This document shows, piece by piece, positions 1-52,007 of a DNA stretch of 64,000 nucleotides. Under the pieces are notes generated by a model. The model saw nothing but the letters and a program-made list of their open reading frames with translations. It did no database searches and was not told where the DNA came from. The DNA is taken from the NCBI GenBank assembly GCA_946965045.2, contig OX337230.1, positions 4,154,001-4,218,000 on the forward strand. Reading direction: 5' to 3'. Numbering within the stretch: position 1 is the stretch's first letter; each line of letters begins with the position of its first letter. The translations under genes and the position numbers were made by a program. Source of the DNA: Epithemia pelagica (Eukaryota; Protista; Bacillariophyta).

Positions 1-1110
1 TCTCCAGTCAATGCAAAACACAACTCATCATCACAAGAAATCGCTGTTGCAAAGCCAAAACCTGACACTCCGACAAAGCGATCTTCTGTTGCCAAACACA
101 GCAACCCACCATATTCTCAGATTATGACTCGCAAACAATATGCCACCGCCGCCAACCTCCTCATTAAAGCATCCAGAGCAAGGCGACAAATCTGCTACAA
201 AGATAAGAACAATATTCGACACATGCCTGGTCAACCTGTTCGTTTGAAACCCAATGATCTCTCCTTGTACAACAAAACAAAAAGTTGCCCCCCCACAATA
301 TCTGAACAGACTTTGAGAAAGAGGGTTGTTGACTTGCAGTATTTGAAAAAGCTTCATGAACATTTCCTTTCCAAAGGTCTGGAAGCTCCAAGAGACAGTT
401 GGGAAGACTGGATTAACGACCATCTCTCACCAGAATCCGACCGAGCCTTCATGTGCTTGGTTGTGATTCTTATGAGTTCCAACACAAGCGACAAACAATT
501 TGCTAAAGTGGTACCCACTTTGTTCCAATGTGGGTTTGTCTCTAGTCGGGCAACCAGTGACATTGCACTCAACTATGGGATGAACGCTGTATGTTCCCTA
601 TTGGCAGAGACTGGTCTATATTATAAGAATGCTGAGGCTATCGTCAACGCAGCAGACTACTTCATCCAACGGCATTCTGGAATTATACCAGAAACCATTA
701 CGATGCAAGAACTAATGTGTCTGCATGGGGTTGGGTACAAGACTGCCACAATTGTCTTGGCATTTGCATTTTAAAGAATTGACGGAATTCCAACTGATGT
801 GCATGTACATCGCTGCTCTCGAGCCCTGGGATGGATCCCCAAATCATGCAACGACCCAGACATGTGCTCGGCTTTGTTGGAGTCTTGGATTCCAAAGGAG
901 TACTGGGAATGGGTCAACCCAATGTTTGGAGCGCTCGGGCAACTAATACAAGACCCAAAGACACGTCACCAATGTTCAGAAATCCAGATGGATTTCACAG
1001 TCCGTCGTCTTGACAAAGACCATAAGAAGAAACTCTTAGACAGCAAAGAGATCTACAACCTACACAACAATTTCCTTCATTTGTATCGGTCCTATTGCAG
1101 TTCCTCATGA
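1..1110 (+). pseudogene. Endonuclease III (Nth)-like HhH-GPD DNA glycosylase, interrupted by one in-frame TAA (772-774); N-terminus off-window
   Basis: Frame is open from base 1. ORFs 124-774 and 799-1110 are in the same frame and read ...LHGVGYKTATIVLAFAF*RIDGIPTDVHVHRCSRALGW. HhH motif with catalytic Lys (GVGYKTA), catalytic Asp (PTDVHV) and MSSNTSD motif are present. No C-terminal 4Fe-4S Cys cluster. Confidence 0.85.
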
Positions 1111-1253
1111 GTCAATTTCTTATTAGTTACTATCTGTTTTTCCTTGTTTGTTCTTTTTCTTTTTGGTTCTCGCATGTATCTTGTATGTAGTCGTTCTCGC
1201 ATGTAGTCGTATGTAGTCTTTTTCGTTTTCTGTTCCGTCATGTTCTGTATTTA

Positions 1254-1567
1254 TCAGTGGTCTTCATTACTGTTATTGGTGCGGCGTCGCGGACTTGTCC
1301 TACGTTGTTGTTGTCGTTGTTCTTCTTGCTGCTCTCCGATGTGTTCTGCAGGAGGTGGTTTCTTTGCTCTCGACGATTTGGACTTGGACTTTGTTCGAGA
1401 TGCCGATTCTTGAATGGATTGTTGGCGCACTCTTTTGGAAGATGCACTCGTTTGAGTTGTTGCCTTCCTTTTTGATAAGGTGGTGGATCGTTGGGTTGTT
1501 GGTGTGGTACTGTGCGTAGCAGGAGTTGTCGTCGAAACGATTCCTGTCACACTTCCTTGAACACTAG
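1254..1567 (-). mobile_element. Displaced C-terminal tail of the hAT transposase ORF (split off by the Copia insertion)
   Basis: Removing 1573-9938 plus one CACTG copy rejoins the frame: ...TTDQGNSTS-ASVQGSVTGIVSTTTPATH..., continuing to the stop at 1254. Confidence 0.85.
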
Positions 1568-1572
1568 CACTG

Positions 1573-2346
1573 TGTTAGAATTCTCACCGTCTATGGTGGT
1601 TAGATTCTACATCTCATCGATTCCCCATGTCACATAGCCTCGTGCTATCACATCATGCCATCTAGCTTCGAGCTATGTTCCCTAGCTTTGCGCTATATCG
1701 ACCTATATTTCTTCGCAAATCATGAAAAGTGAGAATAGATTGACGAACTCACTCTCAAGACTAAACTGGGTCGTGCGGTATTACAACGGACATAAATTTG
1801 GCCGTTGCTCGGATATTATACTAACGCCCTAAGCGTACGCGCCCGAAATCATCGAGCGCGCCCAAGCGACATCCGAGCGCTGTCGGCATCTATCCGACCC
1901 AACGGTCTAAGTATCCCAAGCACGACACACGATCACGCGAGACCATATTTCCATTCCCACAATCTCCAAATTGTCAACAAGCTGCGCGCCATGAAAACAA
2001 CTATGCCAACCCAAAGCAAGAGCTGTTGACCCTGTATATGTTATCCGTCCACATATACATGTCATATACATCACATGAATCGACTCCAAACCTGTTGCCG
2101 CCAAGAACCTATGACACATGACCCTTGGCAGGACCGAACATTTCACGTAGACCTATCGTAGTAATCAACACACAATCTAACAATATCACCATTTATCACA
2201 TCTTCTTTTGTGTCCCGACTATCCTTCTGATAGACTTCGACTTGCTTGCTTCTCTGACCCTGAGAAGCTTGTATCGGTTGGTGACCTACCTGATTGTCTG
2301 CTCTACCGAGCATCAATGTCCCTACGATTCAGAAAGAATTGTAACA
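1573..2346 (+). repeat. 5' LTR (774 bp)
   Basis: Direct repeat of 9165-9938 at a constant offset of 7592. No differences noticed by eye, and the ORF-track translations within the LTRs are identical. Confidence 0.97.
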
Positions 2347-2357
2347 GATTAACAGTC
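2347..2357 (+). promoter_or_regulatory. Putative primer-binding site complementary to a tRNA-Asn(GUU) anticodon arm
   Basis: GATTAACAGTC abuts the LTR end. Its reverse complement GACTGTTAATC matches the anticodon stem-loop of tRNA-Asn as recalled for yeast and bacteria. Confidence 0.55.
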
Positions 2358-2382
2358 TCAAAGCTTATTTCCTTGTGGTTTC

Positions 2383-3162
2383 ATGGATTCTAACGAGCTT
2401 ATCACTCCTGTACGACAGATCTATCGAGCCAAACTGCATCCCGGGCAGCCCGATACCCTGGTGCAGCAGGAACTGGTGCCGACGCCGAAGGCAGCCAACA
2501 CATCGGTCAACATCTCCGTCGACAGTTCCAACAGCAACCCATTCGAGACTCCAACCCAGCCTCACGCTCCGATCCCTGCGCCGTTGCTTCGGCCCCCGAG
2601 TCCGCCTCGTCGGCTCGTCCCTTCTTGATCCCGTCGTACCACCCGGTTGATTGCTGATCATATCAAGTACTTCCGTCAACCAACTTGTTCGACCTTCGAT
2701 CCCGAGATCATCCGTGGGGAGACCCAGATCGAACGCCAGTTCCAATCGGTGACCCACATCGTCGACCAAGAAGACATTGACCGTCTGAACGACCAACTTC
2801 ACCGTTCTCCGAGGCGTCGCCTCATCTTGGCCGCCCTCTCGGGCAACCCCATCCGTACTGTCCACCTCCGCTTCCTAACCTTCGAGCGCCCAACTGGATA
2901 CTACAATACCATCCACGTCGTGAACGCGACGACTTGCCCTCTGCCTCCTAACGTTGTACGCCTAGATAACTACGTTGCCTACATCCACGAGGTCCATACC
3001 ATCGAGGACCATCGTGCAACTATCTACCCTTTGCGTACCGAGGTCGAGAACCACCTGGCTGAAGGTGATACCCCTTCTTCTGTTGCTTGTGCTGCCCCAT
3101 CTGAGCCTGGAAACGACTCTGATTATTCGGAAGAGAGTGGGGATTCGGAGACCGAAGCTTAA
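2383..3162 (+). pseudogene. Extra ORF (ORF0, ~259 codons) upstream of gag inside the Copia, one in-frame TGA at 2626-2628; function unknown
   Basis: ORFs 2383-2628 and 2647-3162 are in the same frame, separated only by TGA. Pro-rich N-terminal part, globular-looking middle, acidic tail. Confidence 0.55.
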
Positions 3163-3482
3163 TTACTCATAGTTAACTCCCGTCCTCTCAAAACCTTTCC
3201 AAGACTTAAACTCAACGCACATCCGGGTACCCTTGGTCGCACAACACGCCACACATTCCCGTCAAATCGCGAAAATTCGGCGAAAATTTGTTGAAACTCG
3301 GCGAAAATTTGTCGGAATCAACGGAAATTTCCAGGAGTCGCACATCACAACACACATCCGGGTATCATATACGTGGTACATACGTGGCACACGTGGTACA
3401 TCCGGGTTCACATCACATCACACATTAAATAAACCACATCACACCGCACATTAAATAAACATCGAACCAACCAAATAACACC

Positions 3483-6400
3483 ATGGATCCTCAATCACCC
3501 AAGACACCTACGACTCCTAAGGGAGAAGATAACCAAGACAATATCTCGGACACAGACCTATTCGACCACATCATATTTACTGTCTGCCAATTCTTTACCA
3601 AAGAAAGGGCCGACTACTTAATGAAGTGGATGAAATACCATGGTTTTGAGAACATTACCCATGTTATCTCGTATATGCAAACTAATACCGAGGAATCCAT
3701 GAAGGAACTGACACAATACAAGGTCAATAAACAGACACATGACCTACAAGGCCCCACAAGACAGCAGATCAAGCTCTTGGCTTATTGGGCCATATACAAG
3801 ACCAATGAAATTCAAGACGAGCTATCCAATAGCGACTGGATGAACCTAACGAGGAAAGAGTTCAACACTTGGAGGATCAACACAGATTTCTCTAAGGGAC
3901 CACCTAGCCAAGTCCCAGTCTCGCCAATGAAGTCACCGTCATCTGTGAAATCTGTCAGCACAGTTACTGCCACATCTCAATCTCAACAAGACCTTACAGC
4001 ATTCAGAAAGGGAACTAAGCGCGACGCAACTGCATATGAGGTATTCAAGGATGAACGATACTACGATTCATTCTGGCGTGTATTCAAGACTACAGCTAAG
4101 GCTCAAGGCCTATCCAACGTTCTGAATTTCAAATACACACCACCCCATGATGATGAGTATGCCGAAGAACTTTTTCAAGAGCAACAAGTATTTCTTTACT
4201 CCGTTCTTGTCCGTATCATTCAGACTGACCAAGGTCGAGCCTATGTACGTGAACATGAACACGATGAAGATGCGCGTGCCGTATTGCAGAAGTTACACTC
4301 TTTGCATACCGAATCCGACCTAGCAAAACGAGAGGTCCTCCGTTTAACCAACTACATTTCCAATCTACGTCTTGACGACGCATGGCGCGGAACAACACGT
4401 CAATTTCTTCTACACTTTCAAGAGCAGCTACGTTTGCTAGACAATCTAGTGACATTGTCTGATCGCATCCCTGATCATACCAGGATGACTTTCCTCATGC
4501 AAGCTGTAGAAAAGGTACCTGATCTCCGCCGAGTCAAGATCTTGGATAATGTGGTGAACACCAAATCCGGTGCAAAATCCCTTTGCTATCAATCATACTT
4601 CCGTCTCCTTCTAGACGCAGCTTATGACCATGATCAAGCAACCCAGTCATCTGTTCATAGTCGCCGTCGACATGTCAAACAACATGAATCACTATATGGC
4701 CAAGATACAGATGCTGACATAACCTCACAAGATGATATGGAGTATCATGTCCACAACACCACAGCGACATCTGAATCTCCATCCTCTTCGTCCAAGGTTA
4801 GTCTACCGCGTGACCTATGGTTCAAACTTTCTGAAGAAGATCGCAAGTTGATCATCGAGTATAACAAGATGATTCAAGCACCTTCATCAACAACACCGAG
4901 GAAAGTGCAAACACATGCCCTCGACATTGATCCGGAACCTGATCCTGACCCCAACCAAGTTGCATCTGATGACGACTCACCTGGCGTAGTCCCTGAGCAT
5001 CCAGATGATTCAGATCCGGTTACACAATTTATCAACCAAGCCATGACGACTGATATCAATCACCCGGCAACTGACCTGACTAGTGTTCTTTCTAACGCCA
5101 AGTCCAAGACGAGCAAGAAGGTTACATTCAAAGCCAACATGCATAAACAAGCAGGACATGTTCCACGCTATCTGTTTTCCAGGAAATCTACTTTACCAGG
5201 AAATCAATTAATTGACCGTGGTGCTAATGGAGGACTTGCTGGTTCTGACATGCGCATCCTTTCTAAGACTGGTCGCCATATCACTATTGTGGGTATTGAT
5301 AACCATGAACTTACTGGACTTCCTGTCGTCACATGTGCCGCAAAGTTTGAGACCAATGATGGACCTATTGTCGGCATCTTCAATGAATATGCTTATTATG
5401 GAAAGGGCTTATCTATCCATGCTCCTGGTCAATTCGAGCATTTTGGACTTGCTGTTGATGAACGATCTGTTAAAGTTGATGGTAAACAACGCATCACTAC
5501 ACTTGATGGTCGTGCTATACCTCTTCACATCAAGGATGGGTTAGCCTACATCCACTCCTTGGGTATCCCCAGTGACGATGACATGGATACCTTACCTCAG
5601 ATCATCTTCACGTCACCCGACACATGGGATCCTGGTGTTCTGGACCATTCGTATTCTCCCACACCCTCTGACAATGATCCTGATTGGAAACACGTCAAGA
5701 CTGATGGTAGTATGTCGAACCATCCATATGACAACTATGGGGAGTACACTGATCGTGTTGTTTGTAACCTCAATCTCCTCTTGGATCTCCCATACGATCA
5801 TGGACCTGATGACGCACCCTTCTTTTCTATCTACGCTGACGCAGAAGGTAATGATCCTACACTTCATGCCTCTGTCCACCGTCGTTACCAGGAAGCGTAT
5901 GACTGGAAGAAGTTCCGTCCATTCTTTGGTTGGCAATCTGAAGATGTTATTGCCGCTACGTTCAAGCACACTACACGTAATGGTAGCATTACTTTTGACC
6001 ACGACACCCTCAAGAAACATTTCAAGGCTCGCAATCCGGTCCTTAATATACCTCGACGTCATGAACCCGTTGCTACGGACTCGGTTTTCTCCGACACCCC
6101 TGCTGTTGACCATGGAGGTAAAGTCGCACAAATCTTTGTTGGTCGAGATACTCTGGTTACTGATATCTATGGGATTAAGTCAACCAAACAGTTTGTCAAT
6201 ACTCTTCAGGACAACATCCGGTTTCGTGGTGCCATGGAGACTCTTATCAGTGATGGTGGTTCATCTCTCATCTCTCAAAAGGTCAAAGACATTCTTCGCA
6301 CTTTGCTTATTGGGGAGTATCGATCCGAACCTTATCATCAACACCAGAATAAGGCTGAAAACCGTTACCAGACCGTTAAACGTATGACCAACGCTCTCAT

Positions 6401-9170
6401 GAATGCCACTGGTTGCCCTGCCAACACCTGGCTTCTTTGCCTTGAGTATGTCTGTGACTTATTGAACCATACGTCATCACCCACCCATTCCGGTCGCACT
6501 CCTCTTGAGGCTCTCTCCGGACGCCCACCCGACATTACTCATCTCTTGTTCTTTCCTTTCTGGGATGAGGTTTACTACCGTGTCGACCCCGCTGAACCCA
6601 ATTCTGGTTCATATCCATCTTCTTCTGATGAGAAACTTGGCCACTGGGTTGGTTTTGCTCACAACGTTGGTGATTCTTTTACTTGGAAGATTCTCACCCA
6701 GGATAACCAGATAATCTACCGTTCTGCCGTTCGCCGTGTTGAATCCACTACACCTAACCTACGTGTGGATCGACCTTCAGGGGAGGATCTGTCTGAGAAG
6801 GATGACAATGATAAGCAAGCTGACACTGTCTTCATTCGCAGTGATAGTGAAGATCCATCCAAACCAATGCCCACGATCGATTTTGACGACATGATAGGAC
6901 GCACATTCCTATGCGACACAGAAGAAAATGGGGAGCGACACCGTGCACGTGTCATCAAACGAGTCATTGATCTTAATGAAGAAGCAACGAAACAGGAAGA
7001 ACGTGTCAAGTACATCTACCGAAAGACAAATTCTGATGTTGATGAGATGATATCCTATAATCAACTCATGGAGTATATCGAACGAGATAACCAAGCTCAA
7101 ACCTCTGGAGATAATCTTTTCAGGTTCAGGGACGTCATCGCCCATCAAGGCCCACTGAACACAACTGATCCAGATTACAAGGGGAGCAAATATAATTTGC
7201 TTGTTGATTGGGAAACTGGGGAGACTACCTATGAACCTTTATCACTCATCGCCAATGATGATCCGATCACTGTAGCAATTTATGGAAAGAAACATGATTT
7301 ACTCAATGAACCTGGATGGAAGCATTTGAAATGTTATGTCAAAACAAGCAAACGTCTCATTCGAGCAGCCAAACAGTCAAGGATTAAACAAGTTCACCAT
7401 TCCGTCAAGTATAAGTTTGGATTCCAAGTACCACGCAATTATGAGGAAGCTGTCGCTCTTGATAAACAACATGGCAACACAAAGTGGCAGGATGCAACGG
7501 AACTAGAATTGTCACAGATCCAGTCCTACAAGACATTCAAGGATTTTGGGAAAGCCATCTTCATTAAAGGGAAAGTATCCAATGCACCTGAAGGATATCA
7601 TAAGATACGTGTACATCTTGTCTTTGACGTAAAACATGATGGACGACATAAAGCAAGACTTGTCGCAGATGGACATCTCACAAAAGAACCTGTTGAGACA
7701 ATCTATTCAGGTGTTGTTTCCATTCGCAACCTCCGCATTGCCTTATTCCTGGGTACTTTGAATGACTTGGAAATATGGGGAGCAGATATTGGAAACGCAT
7801 ATCTGGAAGCCTTGACAGGGGAGAAAATTTTCATTGTCGCAGGACCTGAATTCAAGGAATTAGAAGGTCACATCCTGATTATATACAAGGCACTTTATGG
7901 ATTGAAGTCATCAGGCGCTCGCTGGCATGATGTCTTATTCGATGTTTTGACAGACATGGGATTTTCACCAAGCAAAGCAGATCCGGATATCTGGATGAGG
8001 AAAGCACCCGGAGAAGACTGTTACGAATACATTGCCGTATACGTTGATGACTTAGCCATTATTTCTACTGACCCTGGGAATATCTGCAAGATCCTGAAGG
8101 AGAAATACAACTTCAAACTCAAAGGAGATGGACCTATTGATTTCCACTTGGGATGTTGTTACACCAAGGATTCTGATGGAGCATTAGTAGCAGATCCAAG
8201 ACGCTACATTGGTAAGATGATGGACACTTTCGAACGAATCTTCAAGGAGAAACCCAAGAAAGCCAAAACACCTCTTATTGGTGGAGACCATCCTGAATTG
8301 GATGATTCTGAGCTCCTTGATGAAGAAGGTACTAGCCATTTCCAAACTCTGATTGGACAACTCCAATGGGTGATCACTATTGGTCGTTTCGACGTCTTCA
8401 CCGCTACAATGACGCTATCACGCTTTCGTGCTGCTCCGAGGAAAGGACATCTTGATAGAGCCAAGCGTATCTATGGATACCTTGCACATCTCCCAGAAGG
8501 CGCAATCAGATTTAGGATTGGAGAGCCTGATTATTCAAGTCTTCCTACCCAAGAATTTGATTGGACTCGCACTGTCTATTCGAATGCAAGTGAACGTATT
8601 CCTGAAGACTGCCCAACACCTCTTGGCCGCTATGTTACCACAACTCATTATGTTGATGCCAATCTCATGCATGACATAGTCACTGGTTAATCCGTCACTG
8701 CTGTTCTACATTTGTTGAACGGAACACCTATTGACTGGTACAGCAAGAGACAGAGCACGGTGGAAACTGCTACCTATGGATCCGAGTTTGTGGCTGCAAG
8801 GACAGCAATAGATCAGATTACAGAATTACGACATTCTCTCCGCTACCTTGGAGTACCTATCCGAGAGCAAAGTTACATGTACGGAGATAACAGATCTGTT
8901 GTGCTCAATGCAACCGTTCCTCATTCCATACTATCCAAGAGACACCATCTTCTGTCATACCACCGAGTTCGTGAAGCCATCGCAGCAAAGTATGTTGCAT
9001 TCTACTGGAAAGATGGAAAGACCAACCCTGCCGATATCCTTAGCAAACATTGGGATTTCGTATCTATTTGGCCCATGCTCAAGCCATTGTTGTTTTGGAA
9101 AGGAGAAGTTCAAGACCTCAACAAATCCAATGATGACAAGGCTGAAACGACGAGTTGTGGGGAGTGTTAG
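3483..9170 (+). pseudogene. Copia Gag-Pol polyprotein with a single in-frame TAA (8688-8690) in RNase H
   Basis: Protease DRGANGG; integrase EPVATDSVF...SDGG...QNKAENR; RT ADIGNAYL and YVDDL; RNase H DANLMHDIVTG*SVT...WYSKRQSTVETATYGSEF. 8712-9170 is in the same frame as 3483-8690. Confidence 0.93.
9157..9164 (+). promoter_or_regulatory. Polypurine tract
   Basis: GTGGGGAG immediately 5' of the 3' LTR. Confidence 0.65.
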
Positions 9171-9938
9171 AATTCTCACCGTCTATGGTGGTTAGATTCT
9201 ACATCTCATCGATTCCCCATGTCACATAGCCTCGTGCTATCACATCATGCCATCTAGCTTCGAGCTATGTTCCCTAGCTTTGCGCTATATCGACCTATAT
9301 TTCTTCGCAAATCATGAAAAGTGAGAATAGATTGACGAACTCACTCTCAAGACTAAACTGGGTCGTGCGGTATTACAACGGACATAAATTTGGCCGTTGC
9401 TCGGATATTATACTAACGCCCTAAGCGTACGCGCCCGAAATCATCGAGCGCGCCCAAGCGACATCCGAGCGCTGTCGGCATCTATCCGACCCAACGGTCT
9501 AAGTATCCCAAGCACGACACACGATCACGCGAGACCATATTTCCATTCCCACAATCTCCAAATTGTCAACAAGCTGCGCGCCATGAAAACAACTATGCCA
9601 ACCCAAAGCAAGAGCTGTTGACCCTGTATATGTTATCCGTCCACATATACATGTCATATACATCACATGAATCGACTCCAAACCTGTTGCCGCCAAGAAC
9701 CTATGACACATGACCCTTGGCAGGACCGAACATTTCACGTAGACCTATCGTAGTAATCAACACACAATCTAACAATATCACCATTTATCACATCTTCTTT
9801 TGTGTCCCGACTATCCTTCTGATAGACTTCGACTTGCTTGCTTCTCTGACCCTGAGAAGCTTGTATCGGTTGGTGACCTACCTGATTGTCTGCTCTACCG
9901 AGCATCAATGTCCCTACGATTCAGAAAGAATTGTAACA
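9165..9938 (+). repeat. 3' LTR (774 bp)
   Basis: Copy of 1573-2346, followed by TSD CACTG. Confidence 0.97.
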
Positions 9939-12900
9939 CACTGGTACTATTGCCTTGATCTGTCGTCGATGTAGTGGGATTCATTGTTCGATTTGAAGAT
10001 GCAGAAATACTAGAACCAGCCATCAAGTTCATTTGTTGTAGTTTGACCGCCTCAATGATGCAAGCATCACTATCTGACTGAAATGGGTCCTTGTCTTTGC
10101 CAAGACGACCCATGCATTCCATTTGTTCCTTGTCCCCTTCGTCCACGATATCAATGAGCACTACGTCATCGAATTTTTGTACCAAATCCAGATTAGAATC
10201 ACTGCATTTGTATTCGTATTCTGAACCAACAATCCCATCGTTCCCTTCGTCTTCATCAAGTTCAATTTGTTCCCGGGCCTTGTGGTGCTTCTGCATATCT
10301 TTTACACCCTTCAAAATGGTTTTCAGACGTTTCATATGACCTTGAGTGGTCCCTTCAGCAATGGAATCCCATACCGAGACTTCATCGGTTCCCTGCTCAT
10401 GTTCCTCAACAGCTTCATTTTGTTCTTCATTATCTTCGCCACTGCCGTAGTCAGTTCCATTGTTGTCTTCATCGTCATCGTCATCAACCACGGAGATTAC
10501 TTCCGCCTCTATTTCGGCCTGGGCCTCGTCTCTCTCTTGGCTTGAAGCTGTTCTTTGTTGGTTCTGCAGTTGCTCCTGTTGACTTATCTGGCGCTGTGTG
10601 GCATTACTCCTAGCTTGCTCCTCGGCCTTACCCCTGGTTTGCGCTTCGTCCTCGTTCTCTGTGGTGTGTTGAGATTTCTTTTTCAGGGTCATTTCATTAA
10701 CCTCAATCTCTCCACGAACCTTTCTTGTTACCATCTCCATGGTGCGAATCTCGAAATGTTTCTTGAGCTCGTTCCTCATCAATCTATTGCTATCAAACCA
10801 TGAGGAGAAAGAAAATATCCTCTCTTGGAAAGCGTTTGTAGAAGGCTTCGAGAGCCACACGAGGGCACTTGGGAAAATCATCCTGAAATTACTCTTGTTC
10901 GCCTGCCACCACTGTAAGACATCAAAATACTTGCCCACACTGTTGAAATCTTGATCATTACATGCCCGTCTGAACTTTTTCTTTTCTTGAGGCGTCCATT
11001 TTGGTGACTTTTCAGAAAAAAGAACGGTGGGATACTCCCTAATCAACGATTCCCAGGAACTGTGGATAATGCGCTGACAGTAATCCTTGAACCCCATGAA
11101 TTCGTTGTTACATTGTTCTCTAAAGCTCTTCTTCTGCTCGTCCAACGTGTTAAGATTGTTGTTTTCCACGCACGTGCTGTCTTCATTCTCTCCATGATTC
11201 CGAAAAATATTGAACACATCGTCATCATCCGAGTCGTCGTCTTCTATATCTACAACCTCCTCATTGGCTGTCTCGGCCATTGGGGCTGGTCCATTCATTG
11301 CCAACCTTTCAGGAGTGGAAAACTTTGCTACCATGTCATCAACAAATTGTTTTTGGATTCTGGAGACGTCGTAGTCGTCGTAGATCTTGATTTTTTTCAG
11401 GATGTACGGTGCCATGTAGCAGAGAAACGGATGACCGCAGATAGCATTCTCTGCATGGACGTCGTCACCATTCATCATGTAGGTGCGAAATTCACGTAGA
11501 AGCCGGTTAATAAGCATCCGTGAGGCGGGCAGTAAATCTGCAAACTTGATATTTTTCCTTTTGGAACGGAGTTTCTCTATGGTTAACCTGGCATCCCAAC
11601 GTTGGAACTCTGTGTCTAGTTCTGTGGGGTTCACAAGCAGAACAGAGACACCGTTGTCTTTGTGATATTTAATTCCATGATGGCAACCAAAGATTTCCAG
11701 CAAAGAGCCTGCAGCAGAGGAAGGATCATCTGCTTGTAAGGACATGGCGCATTTCTTGAGTGGAGAAAGAATTCCTTCGAATTCTGCTATGGCCTGCCAG
11801 TCCTCCTTGGACAGATAATTTTCGCGGAAGTCTTTGTCTACAGAAAACTCTTGTGAATTGTAGTCATCCATGACGTACTTATCACGTAGGAGATCATGGA
11901 ATGTGAGAGCGCATCCGAGAACCCTGGTTGTGTTCGGCATACGGATCTCCACTACAACTTGGTGATTTTTTGTTGCGTAGTCCCTCAATGCCTGGAATCT
12001 CTTCTTTCTCTTCGTCATCAGGATTGAAGCTAACTTCAAGGCTTTCTTGTATGTGTCCACAAATCCGGGAAACTGGTCGATTACCCTTCCCCCCCTTCGT
12101 CGTATAGCCAAGCCGGTGGCGTGCTTAAGAATTAATTCCGCACGATGCATATCGCACTTTCCTCCAGTCTGATTTCCCACAATGTACTTTCCGGCAAGGA
12201 CTGCCGAATTTGTATTGTCGTTGACGGAAGAGGAGAGGTCAGACTGCGTAATTCCAACGGTTGTGAGGATTTTTAGTGTGTGAGTCGCCACTTGGGCTGC
12301 TGTGTGGCCGTCTGTTTCGCAGAGACCTACGGGAATCTTGTAAAACACGCAATTCCTGGGGTCAATCAGCATTAGGCACAATCCAAGGATGTCTTTTCGA
12401 TGGCCTTGCCATATGTCATGACAAATTGTGGCGAAGGGAATTGTTTTGCCACAAATTAGCTTGTAGGCCATCCGGACATTCAGGCATAGGGAGGAAACAG
12501 TTTGGAGAAAATTGTTGTAGGAATCAAGTCGCTTGCGTATGATGGCTTTGTTGCTCATGACACAATCTTTTGTCGACAGCTTCTGGGCGTTAAGAATGGC
12601 GAATTCCAGCATAGCTCGGAAGGACTTCTTTTCCACTGTTGAAGTGGGTAAGCCGTTGTCGTTGACAAACTGGTAGATTGATTGTTGAAACTTGATTCTA
12701 GCCTCGTCCTTTGACATCATGGAACCCTTGTAGGATGTCATAAGTGGTTGGTTGCTTTCTACATTGGACTTCGGTCCAATTTTTTTTTCGTTCCATTTCT
12801 TCTTTCACATGCGGGTGGAAAGAATCCATATGTTGGCTAACATTCGAAGAGGAGCCACTTTTCTTCTGCTTGCTGACACCACAGAGGATGGTAGAGGCGA

Positions 12901-13555
12901 AAAAAGACTTCTCTGGGTCTTCAAAGCAAATCGGGCACACCACAAGACGCTTACATATGGATCCCCATGACTTTTTGGGTGCTGTTGGGTCCTCTTTTGA
13001 TGCTTGGTTGAGTACAGCAAAGCATCGAGAAATACCTTCCATTTTGCTAACTTCTTTGGTGTCAAGTCTTGCTTGTAATTCTGTTAACTGGCAAAAGTCC
13101 AAGTGTCTCACTGTTCCCCAGTCGGTATTCAGATTCTTGAAATGCTCTCTCGGTGGACTTTTGAGGAAGGGGACATAGTCTTTCTCTTTCTTGATTTCTT
13201 GATGAATTGCTTCGGTTTGTTGGGCTTGGGTAGGGTGTTGCCTATTCTGTTGATTGTTGTTCCCTTGGGGGGCTAAAGCAGCGGGTGGGTTCTCGTCTTG
13301 CTGTGCAGGTGGAGGGTCTGGGTTCTCTGCTTGTGTGGGATGAGCCGGGGGTGTCTCCTCTTGTTCTGCCATCGTCGGTTGTGTTGACATGATGGTAGAT
13401 CCAGACAGGGTGGACAAGGATGCTGGGCTTTGAAGATGATTAAGAGGCACAATCAAGCCAGACACCATGTGTTGCAAGTTGCAAGCTGCAACAGACAATG
13501 AACTGTTGAAGGATTGGTGGATGGACGGTAGAGGTGAGAGGTAAGAGAGTGTCAC
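9939..13555 (-). mobile_element. hAT-family transposase (BED-type Zn finger + DDE + C-terminal dimerisation domain), frameshifted at an A9 run (12780-12788) and interrupted by the Copia
   Basis: CPICF...SNVSQHMDSFHP BED-like finger in 12698-13555; ICHDIW and VNDNT Asp motifs; QWWQAN...PSTNAFQERIFS hAT C-terminal motif. Deleting one A joins the two ORFs (RKKIGPKSNVESNQPLMTSYKG). Confidence 0.85.
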
Positions 13556-13619
13556 AAGTCACAAAGATGAGGCGGTTGAAGGTAGGGTCACTGTGTGATA
13601 TTGTATAGAAACGTAATTC

Positions 13620-14001
13620 ACATGACACATTGGGGGGAGAATGGTAATTCCATCTGTGCGTAGGAGAAAATTGATTGGATTCTCAAATTCTTATAGTGAG
13701 TAAGAAGGAATTGGATTGGATTGGGAATTGATATCGTCTGATAAAGTGAATTGAATGGAATTGGGAAGTGTCTATTTTAGAGAATTGGGAATTGAATTAG
13801 GGAATTGACATTCCCCGTCTGAGATGATGAGACTTGAATCGGAATAGTGAATCCAAGAAAAAATCGGTATTGAGTTGAGTGGATTGTGAAATTCAATGAA
13901 AGTAAAGGAGGAGGATTTCAATTGAATGGCTTAATTCAAGCTAAATTTAAGTTACATTCCCTAAAGTCATTAAAGTCCCACTTTTTGAATTCCAGACCCT
14001 G
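13620..14001 (-). repeat. Candidate hAT terminus and subterminal repeat region
   Basis: Dense GAATTG/GATTGG short repeats. The minus strand from 14001 reads CAGGGTCTGGAATTCAAAAAG, and CAGGG is a typical hAT TIR start. The partner TIR must lie left of the window. Confidence 0.5.
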
Positions 14002-14237
14002 CTCGTAAGTCGTAAGGTTATAGATTATTGCATCGGGAATATACTGACCCAACTGCGACTTGGACCACTTCCGCTGGGGAATACCAATCGTTTCATCCGA
14101 CTCGTTTCCCGACCGACGGACTGACGGTGGCCGCAGATGGTTTGGGTGACATATATGTGCGCCTGTCTTTTGTTTGCGGTCCGGGGGACCATGACGACGA
14201 CGAGGATGGCACAACAACACGGTTTGCTGCGAACCAT

Positions 14238-15234: not shown

Positions 15235-15570
15235 GCAATCCTGGCCGATTAATAAGAAGGATTGTGGCAAGCCGTGTCCGTAGAATCTGCTATGACACGT
15301 TGCTCCGGCCTGGTTTGTGTGTGAGCAAGTCGCGATTGCTAGAATATCTGTAGGCAACTGTGTTTGTTGACAATCAATGATTGGGGTATACAAGAGAGAG
15401 GGGGACATGGTCGACAATGCCTTTTCGTCTTGTGACGGAATACGTGTATTAGGAGTATAAATTGGCTAGCTATATAATTATACCAAAAAACAACATGAGC
15501 TATTATGGGCTTTTGCATTGATTGTGGTCGTCACCCAGAAGTTGTGAATGTCCGCAAACGCCTAATTCTA

Positions 15571-37440: not shown

Positions 37441-37561
37441 CCAGACACGAGACCATTTGGGTACGGGTTCGGTATCGGCGACCCCATTAAAGCGACCAAA
37501 TACTTCATTGGGTCGCGGGGGAAGTTTTCCTCCCAATCAACACGCAATCCACCCACACACC

Positions 37562-38855: not shown

Positions 38856-38914
38856 GACGTCAACGACAATCAAAATTAAAACGTGCAGTCAAATCGATGA
38901 CCCAGGCCTTGCCC

Positions 38915-45520: not shown

Positions 45521-45613
45521 ACCCTCGGTATCAGTGTCCACTGCTTAGCTGTTTTTTGTCTGTGCCACTTCCATAGGTTCCCAAGTGGACACAGACAACA
45601 AAATTTTCTTTTT
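45521..45613 (+). repeat. Left TIR (93 bp)
   Basis: Exact reverse complement of 51915-52007, checked base by base. Contains an internal near-palindrome (GTCTGTGCCACTT...AAGTGGACACAGAC). Confidence 0.93.
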
Positions 45614-45777
45614 CACAATTCTATTTTTCTGATTTCATCAAATTTCCATTACTATCGAGCAAGCCCTCCTCCCGTTGGAATCAAACGCATGCCCACCATC
45701 CCACTGAATTCAAATCTCACTTTGTCACATCGCATGCTCTGTATTACTCATCTGCTGTTTTGCTGATTTGATGCGGT

Positions 45778-48700
45778 TTGACAATGGCGGCAGATTCCTC
45801 CGACGGAGTAAGTCGACTCAATCGCGAGCTTCATGCACTCAACAATTGGAAAGCCGAACTCTTCTGCAGTGACATTATTGGATATGAGAATCCTGTTGAT
45901 CCCTTTCAATTTACTGATAGGTCAAGGTACAAAGCCACACGGTGCAAACCTACCAACAAGACACAGACACATCCTATTGTTTTTGACTCTTCCAAATTCC
46001 CACCAACTAAAGAAGGCTTGAACAAGCTTTTATGTCACTTGAAGAAACTTGGAATTGCTCATGGTATGAATCTTATCTCTCGAAGTTCCAGTGGAGTTTT
46101 ATCTTGCTATCGATGCCGCACTTTTATTCGCAACAAAGCACTGTCATCTGACAAAAGTGCTACCGACAACGATCTTTGTATTCCCATTGACTCTTCGAAA
46201 GATTTTGATGAAGATGGCATTCAACTTGGGATACGGTCCTACACATATCATCGTGATAAATCAAATGAACGTCCTGATGGAAAGTCGTCTCAAAGGGGAA
46301 CCTGCAGTGGTCGTCCATTGCACATTGAGGAAACATGCAAGGTGTCTTTACGCTTTGGTATTCGTGAAGGACATGATGGATACATCTATTTGAAACAAGG
46401 GTGTGGATATGCATTCCATACAAACCATCCGAAACCCATTCCGGGAGAACTCTCCCTGAAATCAAGACATCTATCAGAGTCAGCAGTAGCTGTTATCAAG
46501 AGTGGTGGTAATGCTTCAATTGGATCTGGATCTGTTCGATACTTTGTGCTCGAGCATAAACAGGAACTTATATCGAGGGGATCAATGCAACGCCTTCAAA
46601 TGGTACCCTCATTTCTGCAAAATTCGTCTAATCCTGTCAATGAGCACTCAACTGCATCGATGATGATCAACTGGATGAGGAAGAATGCAAGCGATCCAAA
46701 TGTCAGATTGCGCTATTGTTTTCTTTCTTGTCGAAAGGAAGGTCGGGCTTTCCATCGCCATTCAAAAGGACGACCACCAACCAATGGACACTTATCAATT
46801 TCAGACGTTGAAGATAGAATGACTTATGTTGATGTTCTTGAGTCCACACACAAGACAAGTAACGACTTTCAAGAAGAGACAACAGACATTGGCCTTGAAT
46901 CGAATGAAGCATTAACAGACGCTTCAAATGCCTCAAGGGAGATAAACCAGGATCTCCAAATTGACGTTTCTTCCAAACGTGTTTTACTTGGTGCTGCATG
47001 GATTGACATGGAAGCTTATCGCCTGTTCCTCCGTTTTCCAGAGATTCTTTTTGTTGATTCTACGCACAAGACGAATAATGAAGGAAGACCATTGCTCTTA
47101 ATGTGTGGCAGAGACCAAAATGGTAAAGCCTTTGTTGTTTGTCGGATTTTTATGCCCAATGAAACAAGTGCATTCTATCGATGGGTCTTTCTCAAGTGTC
47201 TCCCATCTATGATTGGCAGAGATCACTTACAACGAGTTCGCCTAGTAGTCACTGATGGTGACGCGCAAGAGTTTGATGCAGTCGAAGAAGCATGTTGCTC
47301 AGTCCTACCATTGGTTAGAAGATCCCGATGTATGTATCACATTGTTCAAAAGACGTTTGAACGTTCAATAAACAATCATTATTGCTTGGACGCATCGTCA
47401 CATATAGTTTTGAAAGAGATAAAAAGATGGATATACAGTTGGTCTGATGGAAGCTCATGCGTCACAAAGACACAATATGAGTTATCAAAGGGACTTCTGC
47501 TAAAACGAATTCAGAGTGGGGTGTTGGAGCCGTTTTTCACACCGACGGGATTAACAGAAATCGAGCGGTGGATTATAGAGAAAATACTTCCACAGGAAAG
47601 CTCTACTGCCTTTTGGAGAAAAACATATCACCGATGTTTTGATGAATACATGAACAATTCGGGAGAAGCAATGAATCGTTCATGCAAAAATTCAGACATC
47701 TCAGCGAAACCAAACATGTGCATGGCTACGGCAGCCAACGCAATGCTTAACCATTCTTCTCTTGCAGCCAAAGATCGAAGAGTGAATCTTGCTCGACAAC
47801 TTTCAGAAGTTCCTTTATACATTCGACATGATTCAAAGCATAATATCAAGGCTTTATCTGGTGTTTCAAATATGGCACGTCACATGGTTATCCAACAATA
47901 TCGCCAACGAACCCAATACACTGTTGCAAGGTATGCCCCCAACCAATGGTACGTTCTCCGAAATTCTATAAGTGGCTTGTCGGAATTTAGAACGAGCACA
48001 CTTTGCCCTCCTGTGTTTAAGAATGCATGGAAAGTGGTAAACAATGATGGATATCTACAGTGTTCCTGTGGTTACATGCACAGGCACGGGATCCCTTGTC
48101 GTCATCTATTTGCGATTGAACCAGAATATGACACTTCAGACATCGATGTGCGATGGCATCTTGCATATGGTTATTATGCCCATTCTGATGGATTTTCCTC
48201 CCTTACAGAGGCATATGCTGATCTCCAGAAAATGGATCAGATTGGGCTTCGTTTGAAAACAGACATCTCCACAGAAGAAGACTATCCTTATATCTGGTCA
48301 GGCACCGAATATACTATTGACGACATCCTAGAAATTGCAAACAGTCCAGTTCCTCTATGCTGGAACTATACTGTCTCGGAATATCCAACTCAGTATCAGC
48401 CAATAGAAAGAGATCGTACAGGAAAAGAAAGAGAAGATATAGATGACACTGAGTTTCCTTTCACACAAGAGACTACAATGGAGGAGGAGATCGTCGACTC
48501 TGATAAAGTGGACTGCAATGAGTATCAGTTTCAAATGCCATTATCCGACGAGGTAAAGCAGTCAGCTTTGATAACCTTTTTCAAGGATATGCTTCCCTTG
48601 TTCAACTGCCGCTCATCTCGGAAACATCTCATGACAATTCTAAGTGAAGCGCGACAAAACCAATCCCGTGATTTAGGAAGAAAACGCAGACGTGTACTTG

Positions 48701-48804
48701 AGGGCAACAGGACGACAAATGAAATGGACCAATTTATTTCAAGCAATATCGACTTCGACAATTCTCGAAGTTCATATCAACAAACTTACTACAGAAACAG
48801 ATAA
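45778..48804 (+). CDS. MULE transposase with SWIM Zn finger (intact, 1008 aa)
   Basis: FVDSTHKTN, VVTDGD, RCMYH and NNSGEAMN motifs; SWIM CSCGYMHRHGIPCRH. Confidence 0.92.
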   Translation: MTMAADSSDGVSRLNRELHALNNWKAELFCSDIIGYENPVDPFQFTDRSRYKATRCKPTNKTQTHPIVFDSSKFPPTKEGLNKLLCHLKKLGIAHGMNLISRSSSGVLSCYRCRTFIRNKALSSDKSATDNDLCIPIDSSKDFDEDGIQLGIRSYTYHRDKSNERPDGKSSQRGTCSGRPLHIEETCKVSLRFGIREGHDGYIYLKQGCGYAFHTNHPKPIPGELSLKSRHLSESAVAVIKSGGNASIGSGSVRYFVLEHKQELISRGSMQRLQMVPSFLQNSSNPVNEHSTASMMINWMRKNASDPNVRLRYCFLSCRKEGRAFHRHSKGRPPTNGHLSISDVEDRMTYVDVLESTHKTSNDFQEETTDIGLESNEALTDASNASREINQDLQIDVSSKRVLLGAAWIDMEAYRLFLRFPEILFVDSTHKTNNEGRPLLLMCGRDQNGKAFVVCRIFMPNETSAFYRWVFLKCLPSMIGRDHLQRVRLVVTDGDAQEFDAVEEACCSVLPLVRRSRCMYHIVQKTFERSINNHYCLDASSHIVLKEIKRWIYSWSDGSSCVTKTQYELSKGLLLKRIQSGVLEPFFTPTGLTEIERWIIEKILPQESSTAFWRKTYHRCFDEYMNNSGEAMNRSCKNSDISAKPNMCMATAANAMLNHSSLAAKDRRVNLARQLSEVPLYIRHDSKHNIKALSGVSNMARHMVIQQYRQRTQYTVARYAPNQWYVLRNSISGLSEFRTSTLCPPVFKNAWKVVNNDGYLQCSCGYMHRHGIPCRHLFAIEPEYDTSDIDVRWHLAYGYYAHSDGFSSLTEAYADLQKMDQIGLRLKTDISTEEDYPYIWSGTEYTIDDILEIANSPVPLCWNYTVSEYPTQYQPIERDRTGKEREDIDDTEFPFTQETTMEEEIVDSDKVDCNEYQFQMPLSDEVKQSALITFFKDMLPLFNCRSSRKHLMTILSEARQNQSRDLGRKRRRVLEGNRTTNEMDQFISSNIDFDNSRSSYQQTYYRNR

Positions 48805-48839
48805 TGATGTGATTAGAAACATGAATTTTTGTGTGTCAT

Positions 48840-50294
48840 TTATACTTGTTTGAGGTAGTCACGAATACATTCTTCAATTGGAGTCGAGCCCAGATCATTA
48901 TTGTTTTTCCCCACAACTGACGTTTTCATATACAAGGAAAGAACAAAGACGTCTGAATCAACAACTTTTTTTGAAACACAATGGTATTCTTGAGGGTTGA
49001 AAATCAGGATGTCCAGATTTCGAAGAGCAACTTTGTGACCAAGTTCAGGAAAGACAAAGTAGCATAAGACTTCTTCGTTTTGACAAACAGATTCTTCAGG
49101 ACTCATTGCAACGACCACAGAGTACCCATAGTCTTGGTCTTTGTGAGCTGCTAGGAAAACATTCCGTCCGAAGGATATAGCACTGAAGAAGGTAGATTTC
49201 TTTCCATCGACTCCCAAAGTCGGGATGTCTTGAATCTTAATGAAATTCGAAAAGCCAAAAATGTAGGACCAGTCCGCCCAAGCGTAGAACTCCTCTTCGA
49301 TCTGTTTGACAAACCTGACCATCGTTTTCAAGTCTTTCTTGCTCATCAAATGTAACTTGGATGGAACAATTCCTTTCCCACCTCGGTTTGCCGTCATTCC
49401 AACTGTTACATACGATGATTTGTTTGAATCTTGTGCCACAAATTGTTTTTTGCCTCTCTGTTGGAACTTTACCTGACTCTCAAGTTTCGCGAGAACCTCG
49501 ATGACTTTGTCTTCGAAAGCAAAGGTGGTAAGGTTCTTGTTTCTCGGAGTTTTGAGGAAGACGGGAAGCTCAGCTTTTTGTGGACGAAACATGGCCCCAC
49601 CTTGTCCCACATCAGTTGTTAGAAACAATGACAATGAAATGAAGTCCAACTGAGAAGATGTTTGATTGTTAGAAACAAACAAAGACTCAGATGCGTCATC
49701 TTTGAAAACACAGCATTTTTTGTCAAGAACTTGTTCAGACAGTGTGTGTTCACTTGAGGCATTGTCAACCTTCTTCAGTTCCATCTGCTTCTTTGATTTT
49801 TTATTCCGATGGTATCGCTGATTTTTAGATCTTGCCTTGGAGCATCCATGCAATATAACCTGTCCAACTTGTGTTCGTCGTGAAGAAGGCTTGTTAGACT
49901 TGAACGTATGTATGATGTTGGTGATAGAGCAATCGTTTTTTTTGTAGCTGTGCTTGCTAAGGTTTCGGATCAACTTTGAAGCAGTTTTCTTCTTTGTAGT
50001 GTGCGATGAATTCAGTCCCGCCCTATGGATAGAAGATCTATCCAAGCGCAAGGCGGTGAGACCCTTGTCATTTGATGCATGACACATGCTCGAAGAGCAT
50101 GTTGGGTCTGATCGGCCACCCTTGAGAACTTTTGCGTCGCCACATGATTCCATCTTTTCTGCCAGTCCCGCCCAATGGAAAGAAGATCTATCCACGGACA
50201 AGGCGGTGAGACCCTTGCCATTGGAATGGCACACACTCATAGAGTGTGCTGGGTCTGATTGGCCACCCTTAAGAACTTTTTTGGCAACAGACAT
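48840..50294 (-). CDS. TET/JBP-like Fe(II)-dependent dioxygenase (484 aa)
   Basis: H384-K-D386 (49137-49145) and distal H438 (48981-48983) in AHKDQD...YFVFPELGHKVALRNLDILIFNPQEYHCVS...SLYMK. This matches the compact double-stranded beta-helix pattern of TET/JBP enzymes. Lys/Arg-rich N-terminal half. Confidence 0.68.
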   Translation of the reverse strand: MSVAKKVLKGGQSDPAHSMSVCHSNGKGLTALSVDRSSFHWAGLAEKMESCGDAKVLKGGRSDPTCSSSMCHASNDKGLTALRLDRSSIHRAGLNSSHTTKKKTASKLIRNLSKHSYKKNDCSITNIIHTFKSNKPSSRRTQVGQVILHGCSKARSKNQRYHRNKKSKKQMELKKVDNASSEHTLSEQVLDKKCCVFKDDASESLFVSNNQTSSQLDFISLSLFLTTDVGQGGAMFRPQKAELPVFLKTPRNKNLTTFAFEDKVIEVLAKLESQVKFQQRGKKQFVAQDSNKSSYVTVGMTANRGGKGIVPSKLHLMSKKDLKTMVRFVKQIEEEFYAWADWSYIFGFSNFIKIQDIPTLGVDGKKSTFFSAISFGRNVFLAAHKDQDYGYSVVVAMSPEESVCQNEEVLCYFVFPELGHKVALRNLDILIFNPQEYHCVSKKVVDSDVFVLSLYMKTSVVGKNNNDLGSTPIEECIRDYLKQV

Positions 50295-50436
50295 TTAGAA
50301 GAAGACCACAACAGACTTGAGCAGGAGTAAACTTTTCTTTTAATCTGGAAAGAACAATGTGCAACAAAAAATATAAGCAAGGAGGTAAGCAAGGAGTTGG
50401 AGCAATATACGTGACATCCATTCAAACAACAACCCA

Positions 50437-51723
50437 ACTTACCAATGTAGAGTTATGCTTGTTCAAAGATGGTCAGTCCCAAGAGACAAAAAAGTCGTAC
50501 CACTCCACTCAATCCAGTACAACTTTTTCTGTAGCAATTCGCCGGAATGCGGTTTACAACTGTTGTAAAGAGGGGTTAGAGACGGTTCTAATGCAAAAGA
50601 GTAGACTCCAATCTGACTTACCAATGTAGAGTTATGCTTGTTCAAAGATTGACAGTCCCAAGAGACAAAAAAGTCGTACCACTCCACTCAATCCAGTACA
50701 ACTTTTTCTGTAGCAATTCGCCAGAATGCGGTTTACAACTGTTGTAAAGAGGGGTTAGAGACGGTTCTAATGCAAAAGAGTAGACTCCAATCTGACTTAC
50801 CAATGTAGAGTTATGCTTGTTCAAAGATTGACAGTCCCAAGAGACAAAAAAGTCGTACCACTCCACTCAATCCAGTACAACTTTTTCTGTAGCAATTCGC
50901 CAGAATGCGGTTTACAACTGTTGTAAAGAGGGGTTAGAGACGGTTGTAATGCAAAAGAGTAGACTCCAATCTGACTTACCAATGTAGAGTTATGCTTGTT
51001 CAAAGATTGACAGTCCCAAGAGACAAAAAAGTCGTACCACTCCACTCAATCCAGTACAACTTTTTCTGTAGCAATTCGCCAGAATGCGGTTTACAACTGT
51101 TGTAAAGAGGGGTTAGAGACGGTTCTAATGCAAAAGAGTAGACTCCAATCTGACTTACCAATGTAGAGTTATGCTTGTTCAAAGATTGACAGTCCCAAGA
51201 GACAAAAAAGTCGTACCACTCCACTCAATCCAGTACAACTTTTTCTGTAGCAATTCGCCAGAATGCGGTTTACAACTGTTGTAAAGAGGGGTTAGAGACG
51301 GTTCTAATGCAAAAGAGTAGACTCCAATCTGACTTACCAATGTAGAGTTATGCTTGTTCAAAGATTGACAGTCCCAAGAGACAAAAAAGTCGTACCACTC
51401 CACTCAATCCAGTACAACTTTTTCTGTAGCAATTCGCCAGAATGCGGTTTACAACTGTTGTAAAGAGGGGTTAGAGACGGTTCTAATGCAAAAGAGTAGA
51501 CTCCAATCTGACTTACCAATGTAGAGTTATGCTTGTTCAAAGATTGACAGTCCCAAGAGACAAAAAAGTCGTACCACTCCACTCAATCCAGTACAACTTT
51601 TTCTGTAGCAATTCGCCAGAATGCGGTCTACAACTGTTGTAAAGAGGGGTTAGAGACGGTTCTAATGCAAAAGAGTAGACTCCAATCTGACTTACCAATG
51701 TAGAGTTATGCTTGTTCAAAGAT
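50437..51723. repeat. Tandem array of 179-bp units, 7 full copies plus a 34-bp partial
   Basis: ACTTACCAATG recurs at 50437, 50616, ... 51690 (exact 179 period); only a few substitutions between units. Confidence 0.97.
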
Positions 51724-51914
51724 GAGGGATGGGTCAATGGTTTTTTGTTGTTGGTTGTGCTTTGTGCAGACTGTGTAGTGTGCTTGTTGTTTTGGAGAGT
51801 GTGAGAGAAGAACTAGCGAGTTGGTCAGTGGTGCTTCAACGGTCAAAACTAGCGAGCATGTCATTCTAGGGAGTTAAATTACAGGTAAAGGGAATTTCTA
51901 GCAAGGAAACCGGA

Positions 51915-52007
51915 AAAAAGAAAATTTTGTTGTCTGTGTCCACTTGGGAACCTATGGAAGTGGCACAGACAAAAAACAGCTAAGCAGTGGACACTGATAC
52001 CGAGGGT
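51915..52007 (-). repeat. Right TIR (93 bp)
   Basis: Exact reverse complement of 45521-45613. Confidence 0.93.

Follow-up and report, generated by a model that had tools for sequence, protein, structure and literature searches.

What leads two unrelated DNA transposons of one diatom genome to carry, each beside its transposase gene, a gene for an enzyme that acts on DNA bases? The question is raised by 64,000 nucleotides of Epithemia pelagica (GenBank assembly GCA_946965045.2, contig OX337230.1, positions 4,154,001 to 4,218,000 of the forward strand), the whole of which is called here the window. Two families of DNA transposons, unrelated to each other and each with two genes, are represented in it by copies, one of the hAT superfamily, whose second gene encodes a putative DNA glycosylase related to NTHL1 and endonuclease III (EndoIII), and one Mutator-like element (MULE), whose second gene encodes a predicted dioxygenase of the TET/JBP fold. 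An earlier reading made from the letters alone, the sequence-only reading, had described these two convergent pairs, and both are present and convergent. The second gene of either family is enclosed by the ends of the element and points tail-to-tail at the transposase gene; it travels with the element, and the linkage has persisted across deep divergence. As for the reason, the most likely mechanism, to which we give about even credence, is that these elements themselves encode the removal of 5-methylcytosine (5mC), by two independent chemistries.

The hAT element extends from 1441 bp upstream of window position 1 through 14001 and has CAGGG ends. Its left part was read on locus L019, which is the window's own contig, ctg1262l of the ENA assembly ERZ21939226 (loci L012 and L019 match exactly, in proteins and in DNA). 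An 8-bp target site duplication (TSD), CTCGTAAG, stands on both sides of the copy, at L019:5069-5076 immediately before the left end and at 14002-14009 after the right one. The terminal inverted repeats are of the CAG/TAG type, with CAGGGTCTGGAA at both ends (12/12 match, imperfect beyond); the right repeat lies at 13975-14001 on the minus strand, and its left partner 1441 bp upstream of the window. With the dimerisation domain Dimer_Tnp_hAT (PF05699), which the window transposase matches only marginally (21.8 bits against a cut-off of 21.4), all features of the superfamily are present, namely the 8-bp TSD, the short inverted repeats and this domain. The sequence-only reading had doubted the linkage of hAT and glycosylase since the far end fell off the window, and had allowed that the glycosylase gene might lie outside the element; the left end found on L019, with the same 8 bp on both sides, places the gene inside.

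The transposase gene of this copy occupies 9944-13555 on the minus strand, as a main open reading frame (ORF) up to 12741 and an upstream ORF (12698-13555) in a different frame. Its last ~105 codons stand apart at 1254-1572, also on the minus strand, severed from the remainder by a Copia long terminal repeat (LTR) retrotransposon at 1573-9938 on the plus strand (8366 bp; Pfam RVT_2 and rve), which lies inside the gene. As it stands, the ORF with the dimerisation domain (9895-12741, minus strand) ends within an LTR; with the Copia and one copy of its TSD excised in silico, the transposase ORF runs for 1059 amino acids (aa) across the junction, to position 1254. This Copia is very young; its LTRs, at 1573-2346 and 9165-9938, measure 774 bp each and are 100% identical, and its TSD, CACTG, is found at 1568-1572 and 9939-9943.

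On a different contig (L004) there is a paralog without the Copia, which aligns colinearly with window 1-1572 and 9944-14001 at 98.8-99.0% identity. It measures 7063 bp, with CAGGGTCTGGAA at each end and the 8-bp TSD GGTGCAAT. In the window copy, the stops of transposase and glycosylase are ~143 bp apart, tail-to-tail. Frameshifts occur in both genes of the L004 copy, the one in the glycosylase in a C run. To judge from their sequences, both young hAT copies are dead, by different lesions: the L004 copy through its frameshifts, and the window copy because the Copia splits its transposase and a premature TAA stands in its glycosylase. The hAT pair of the sequence-only reading is a real pairing, seen in a copy that the Copia has split and whose glycosylase carries a TAA at 772-774. 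At the locus itself, no clean empty hAT site was found on contig L014 (ctg1299l), where homology ends ~42 bp beyond the hAT end. This contig is 96.6% identical to window 14104-22940, has a short match back to ~14043 and is wholly different further left; it probably comes from the second haplotype, which would then differ in structure where the hAT lies.

The glycosylase gene was called at L019:5571-7292. Its ORF starts at L019:5571, 947 bp upstream of the window, and its C-terminal 369 codons lie at 1-1110 on the plus strand, in a frame open from position 1. The premature in-frame TAA, on the same strand, falls within the HhH-GPD domain, at a codon that reads Gln in the paralogs, including the 96%-identical protein P0005. 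The pieces on either side of it were searched separately, and the uninterrupted paralogs P0005 and L004 were used to establish identity. P0005 matches human NTHL1 (7rds) with an E of 7.6e-20, and bacterial endonuclease III with E values of 1e-18 to 1e-9 (2abk 8e-10). The Pfam domain HhH-GPD scores 33.1 bits in the uninterrupted paralog (L004:9926-10774; cut-off 26.2) and 17.1 bits in the window piece alone. The catalytic Lys is seen in GVGYK, aligned with GVGPK of NTHL1, and the catalytic Asp in PTDVHV, aligned with AVDTHV; both are retained in every member of the clade that covers those sites. The hAT cargo is, on these alignments, a member of the NTHL1/EndoIII family. EndoIII, NTH1, MutY and DME have a four-Cys iron-sulfur loop, in EndoIII/NTH1 a C-terminal Cys-x6-Cys-x2-Cys-x5-Cys that binds [4Fe-4S]; P0005, P0007, P0158 and the window copy all lack it, and a distant free-standing relative, P0159, retains a Cys-rich tail. 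The transposon clade has lost the iron-sulfur cluster.

A comparable pair was found on a 7.3-kb sediment-metagenome contig (L005), in which a glycosylase 54% identical to that of the window converges on a hAT transposase (a single ORF of 1363 aa; 40% identity over 717 aa; Dimer_Tnp_hAT 26.7 bits). Only the last ~330 residues of the glycosylase are conserved with this relative, and the long N-terminal part is non-conserved and has no Pfam match. Given that the L005 pair is diverged and comes from an unrelated metagenome contig, the pairing of hAT and glycosylase is old and not confined to this genome. A JGI metagenome scan returned no glycosylase relatives.

The MULE of the window is bounded by terminal inverted repeats of 93 nt at 45521-45613 (plus strand) and 51915-52007 (minus strand), which are 100% complementary to each other. 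Homology between this element and the L003 copy ends at 45522, at the inverted end. The intact transposase of 1008 aa (45778-48804, plus strand) matches the Pfam families MULE (PF10551; 56.9 bits, cut-off 27.6), ZSWIM1-3_RNaseH-like (47 bits) and SWIM (PF04434; 20.0 bits, cut-off 19.6). The TET-like gene follows at 48840-50294 on the minus strand, with the two stops 35 bp apart. The window MULE copy looks functional, with both of its ORFs intact. A TSD of 4-12 bp, with a slack of +/-4 nt per end, was sought in four MULE copies (window 45521-52007; L003 1077-14670; L001 8512-15329; L002 8743-14867) and none was found, the sole match being a 5-bp chance match. The usual duplication is of 8-11 bp, and it is absent although the inverted ends are perfect and the homology between copies stops exactly there.

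A 179-bp tandem array (50437-51723; 7.2 copies, 99% matches) lies between the start of the TET-like gene and the right inverted end. Arrays with a period of 178-179 bp stand upstream of the TET-like gene in all three MULE lineages, also at L001 8826-9976 and L002 8921-10111, with 6.5-7.2 copies and 98-99% internal identity; the period is conserved between lineages and the sequences are not alignable. The non-catalytic N-terminal part of the TET-like protein has an internal duplication of ~150 bp at window 50013-50280, and L001 has a 180-bp repeat (2.6 copies) at the corresponding position; it seems that the N-terminus expands through repeats of the kind that make up the upstream array. In L003, a second Copia (~L003:1984-10161) interrupts the 5' part of the TET-like gene, with a 5-bp overlap equivalent to window 50027-50031, and Copia elements repeatedly insert into DNA transposons in this genome. 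Word depth in the DNA contigs of three public runs is ~50,000-80,000 over the MULE inverted end (window 45521-45684) and ~500 in the interior, a ~100-fold excess that suggests a large population of short derivatives sharing these ends.

The MULE cargo is an intact protein of 484 aa, predicted to be an Fe(II)/2-oxoglutarate-type dioxygenase with its catalytic domain at residues 189-484. A profile of four sequences, compared with 1.84 billion representatives, gave 1079 relatives with E<=0.001, of which 219 reached E<=1e-30. In 62 relatives, the domain residues H196, D198, D200, F227, D240, H250 and K269 are invariant, among them the HxD...H iron triad H196, D198 and H250 (H384, D386 and H438 of the protein). 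The AlphaFold2 model of the catalytic domain, built on the alignment of these 62 sequences, reached a predicted local distance difference test score (pLDDT) of 92 and a predicted template modelling score of 0.91; an alignment of four sequences gave a pLDDT of 46. The best 25 Foldseek matches among PDB structures are all TET/JBP enzymes, including Coprinopsis CcTet, Chlamydomonas CMD1, human TET2 and Naegleria NgTET1 (E 5e-9 to 1e-6), and AlkB-type enzymes rank only below them. The predicted double-stranded beta-helix is closest to the solved TET/JBP members, N-terminal extension included. The Pfam family Tet_JBP (PF12851) was matched weakly by 6 of the 62 relatives (best E 0.0017), and it occurs in 36% of the members of an Atlas language-model neighbour cluster. 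Five residues after the distal His, by sequence comparison, the family consensus has Arg and the window protein Lys. On the strength of the modelled fold and the conserved motifs, rather than of Pfam, the MULE cargo is taken to be TET/JBP-like in its fold and its metal site.

The pairing of this gene with a MULE is likewise recurrent. A word search gave four relatives of the 484-aa protein, three of them on large contigs of the same assembly (L001, L002 and L003), and on each of these the TET-like gene stands tail-to-tail with a MULE transposase within inverted ends of the element's own (36 nt in L001, 34 nt in L002). Identity to the window pair is 97% for the transposase and 95% for the cargo in L003, 48% and 45% in L001, and 24% and 40% in L002; since the pair recurs at such identities, it predates the split of the three MULE lineages. 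The TET-like ORFs, of 473-559 aa, are intact at 40-45% identity and keep the catalytic residues, and each stands in the same place and direction with respect to a transposase that has diverged along with it. Outside this genome, an annotated relative is found in the diatom Cyclotella cf. meneghiniana. Another relative, 25% identical, occurs as an identical protein on 24 lake and sea metagenome contigs (L008-L010, L015; G+C content 36%), beside cyclin, ankyrin and RING genes, and appears to be a stand-alone gene of a widespread small eukaryote or a giant virus.

Both elements bear the traces expected of methylated DNA. The ratio of observed to expected CpG (CpG o/e) is 0.68-0.70 in the two DNA transposons, 0.87 in the Copia and 0.95 in a 31-kb host stretch. 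Among the differences between young copies, CpG transitions account for 10 of 52 in the hAT (2.8-fold enriched, p 0.002) and 20 of 70 in the MULE (4.4-fold, p 1e-8), against a baseline in which CpG bases make up 6.6-6.8% of the sequence. This CpG decay is probably a mark of cytosine methylation, and on account of it both elements can be regarded as targets of the very system that their cargo is proposed to counter. Phaeodactylum agrees with this: there, CpG methylation that depends on DNMT5a occurs only on transposons, and young ones become de-repressed when it is lost (PMC9998398; PMC12344493).

Removal of 5mC by the elements themselves would then proceed as follows. Both enzymes would act on the CpG-methylated DNA of their own element and its relatives, removing or converting 5mC, the TET-like dioxygenase by oxidising it and the glycosylase by excising the base, with host repair completing the work. 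Methylation-based silencing would thereby be relieved for a time sufficient for transposase expression. A tail-to-tail layout would result if, as is probable, the two genes of an element are driven from opposite ends. Most likely the two families act independently of each other, and chance has brought them together within 52 kb. Counter-silencing of this kind is plausible because diatom transposons are CpG-methylated, because CpG decay is seen in both elements and because fungal DNA transposons carry TET/JBP genes. The sequence-only reading had proposed it as a general strategy of diatom DNA transposons. What holds up is that the enzymes lie inside the ends, in old pairings with catalytic residues kept, in elements marked by CpG methylation and with a fungal precedent; the generality is not supported, eleven TET-like loci outside this genome having no MULE transposase in the available DNA. 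That reading had also pointed to the shared layout and the 52-kb proximity; both are within chance, the prior for two convergent pairs being 1 in 16, and neither was taken as a signal. The layout is the one reported for classical MuDR and is not constant in fungi.

Several observations weigh against self-encoded removal of 5mC. Both elements are CpG-depleted and CpG transitions are still accumulating in them, from which it follows that carrying the cargo does not leave them free of methylation. Between young copies, dN/dS is 0.27-0.28 for both transposases (0.27 for that of the MULE, against the L003 copy) and 0.64 for the TET-like gene, and the glycosylase has 7 non-synonymous changes to 1 synonymous, which makes recent constraint on the cargo weak or unmeasurable; selection on the cargo is argued from ORFs that stay intact, with their catalytic residues, down to 40-54% identity. 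No RNA runs containing the element were found, the four runs compared with it being DNA contigs and silent on expression. The TET-like relatives elsewhere stand without a MULE: no MULE transposase was present in the available flank, up to 8 kb, of the eleven loci outside this genome (a check that took in L006-L011 and L015-L018, with the Cyclotella contig and the contigs with cyclin and ankyrin genes); a metagenome scan with the four-sequence TET alignment gave 4 loci, none with a MULE transposase. As regards the dioxygenase, the TET/JBP identity given in the sequence-only reading stands in fold and motifs and not in Pfam, where the window ORF, whole or as its C-terminal part, has no match even at E 10; the profile of 62 relatives likewise matches no PDB chain by sequence, and the residue invariant 19 positions beyond the distal His is a Lys, whereas an Arg that binds the C5 carboxylate of 2-oxoglutarate is usual after that His. 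As regards the glycosylase, EndoIII/NTH1 enzymes normally excise oxidised pyrimidines, not 5mC, and the 5mC glycosylases DME and ROS1 keep the Fe-S cluster that the transposon clade is without.

It is also conceivable, if unlikely, that the role of the cargo enzymes lies in transposition or in DNA repair rather than in escape from epigenetic silencing. The glycosylase, as an apurinic/apyrimidinic lyase, could nick or process donor or target DNA or channel gap repair, and the dioxygenase could mark the DNA of the element (for example, by turning T into 5-hydroxymethyluracil, as JBP does) and in this way guide the transposase or shield the ends. The retention of the catalytic Lys of a bifunctional glycosylase/lyase would suit such a role, as would the lack of a TSD at four MULE copies, a hint of unusual integration or repair; moreover, helper second genes of unknown function are said to be classical in Mutator elements, as in maize MuDR with mudrA and mudrB. 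NgTET1 also acts on thymine, and 5-hydroxymethylcytosine was undetected in Naegleria DNA (PMC12344493). On the other hand, no known hAT or Mutator mechanism requires a glycosylase or an oxygenase, the elements lie in a CpG-methylated context, and the nearest documented case, that of the fungal TET-bearing transposons, is interpreted as anti-silencing (PMC12730594). The glycosylase has further been considered as a device against decay, which would remove T from the T:G pairs left by 5mC deamination, like Mig and functionally like MBD4, and protect a methylated element from C-to-T erosion. Its EndoIII family membership and the CpG-transition pressure on the elements are consistent with this, and a Methanobacterium plasmid reportedly carries an EndoIII-type mismatch glycosylase beside a cytosine methyltransferase. 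However, with a CpG o/e of only 0.68-0.70 and CpG transitions as the largest class of differences, the protection would be poor if any, and the parallel TET-like cargo would be left unexplained; we consider this explanation improbable.

The two families might instead, as the sequence-only reading had allowed, share a pathway in trans, to their mutual benefit, in which the MULE dioxygenase oxidises 5mC and the hAT glycosylase excises the oxidised base. The result would be a distributed demethylation kit, the transposon-encoded equivalent of the animal TET-TDG pathway, with an Fe-S-less NTH-derived glycosylase of a different family in the place of TDG. Both families do occur in one genome, here 31.5 kb apart, and NTH-type enzymes are said to prefer oxidised pyrimidines, which are the products of TET; yet the proximity is within chance, the hAT copy of the window is dead, and the metagenome contig with hAT and glycosylase gives no evidence of the MULE family. 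The fungal TET-bearing transposons are reported to have no such partner enzyme (PMC12730594). We rate the joint pathway as slightly more doubtful than protection against decay, and the notion of a distributed kit as doubtful to the same degree. Finally, the second genes could be useless passengers captured in the manner of Pack-MULEs, or host genes that merely lie between two ends. The TET-like family also stands alone in other organisms (the Cyclotella contig and those with cyclin and ankyrin genes), and constraint between young copies is weak, as passengers would predict. Captured fragments normally decay, however, whereas here TET-like ORFs remain intact at 40-45% identity, with all catalytic residues and in a fixed position and orientation beside a co-diverged transposase, and the glycosylase does likewise at 54% identity in another sample, all of which makes this very improbable.

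DNA transposons with TET/JBP genes have been described in fungi, in eleven lineages that include hAT, Harbinger, EnSpm and Helitron but not MuDR, and were read as escaping methylation silencing (Kojima 2025, PMC12730594). According to the same study, the hosts belong to three fungal lineages, the rusts, mushrooms and Pezizomycetes, the cargo stands in either orientation, and TET/JBP genes in fungal KDZ elements go back to Iyer et al. 2014 (PMC12730594). The MULE described here resembles these elements in being a cut-and-paste transposon with a TET/JBP-type gene within its ends, beside the transposase and recurring in the family; the fungal cases further involve several superfamilies, old cargo clades and exchange of cargo between elements. 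It differs from them in its diatom host, its MULE carrier, a protein too diverged for Pfam Tet_JBP and a 178-179-bp array that is always upstream.

The hAT cargo shares with human NTHL1 and Escherichia coli endonuclease III (Nth) the best sequence matches, the HhH-GPD domain and the catalytic Lys (GVGxK) and Asp (xDxHV). Unlike them, it has no [4Fe-4S] loop, bears a long non-conserved N-terminal extension and is carried by a transposon, the window copy being a pseudogene. Its functional model may be sought in plant DEMETER and ROS1, HhH-GPD glycosylase/lyases of the EndoIII lineage that are reported to remove 5mC and reactivate silenced transposons; these differ from the hAT cargo in that they keep the Fe-S cluster, have extra conserved domains and are host genes, and no specific sequence relationship to them was found. 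With maize MuDR, as it is generally described, the MULE shares long inverted ends and a second gene, mudrA and mudrB being convergent and driven from the two ends. VANDAL Mutator elements encode VANC, a factor that undoes their own DNA methylation, in work cited by Kojima (PMC12730594). Neither mudrB nor VANC is an enzyme of DNA-base chemistry, and both are unrelated to TET/JBP. De Mendoza et al. reportedly described, in 2018, retrotransposons that had captured cytosine methyltransferases. Phytophthora transposons carry SET-domain cargo, again as cited by Kojima (PMC12730594). DNMT and SET cargo are likewise enzymes on mobile elements that act on such marks; unlike the cargo described here they are writers, with the opposite chemistry, and none is a glycosylase.

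To our knowledge, the only transposon-borne erasers of cytosine methylation on record are the TET/JBP genes of fungal elements, and we know of no diatom demethylase. Full-text literature searches gave no report of a eukaryotic transposon carrying a DNA glycosylase. The TET-like cargo adds a new host group, the diatoms, and a new carrier superfamily, Mutator, to a known kind; two superfamilies, each with a putative eraser, extend a published concept, of which the glycosylase route is the new element. If the enzymes do remove 5mC, active DNA demethylation exists in diatoms, it is encoded by the elements that methylation should silence, and mobile DNA has, on separate occasions, taken up both biochemical routes of demethylation. 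These are small proteins, intact copies are at hand and transposon silencing in Phaeodactylum depends on methylation (PMC9998398), which makes the question directly testable; the enzymes could also serve as compact demethylation tools.

The remainder of the window, according to ORF and Pfam scans, is gene-dense eukaryotic DNA with Kelch, annexin, raptor-like and DUF6824 genes, broken up by mobile elements. Kelch-repeat paralogs of ~85-89% DNA identity lie at 15571-16785 and 21345-22532, on either side of the annexin gene, and more copies of the Kelch gene stand just upstream of the window (L019:1-709 and 2844-4022). An ORF of 151 aa and a neighbouring one of 740 aa (window 57707-60450; L013) occur on at least six assembly contigs in differing surroundings and probably belong to another repeat family; the 151-aa ORF had been tried as an anchor for an allelic contig near the MULE and was dropped as part of that repeat. 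A perfect 31-nt inverted repeat at 54764-55049, its arms separated by 224 nt, may be a miniature inverted-repeat element. At 52702-53135, 0.7 kb past the right end of the MULE, there is a degenerate 55-bp tandem array of 8 copies with 72% matches.

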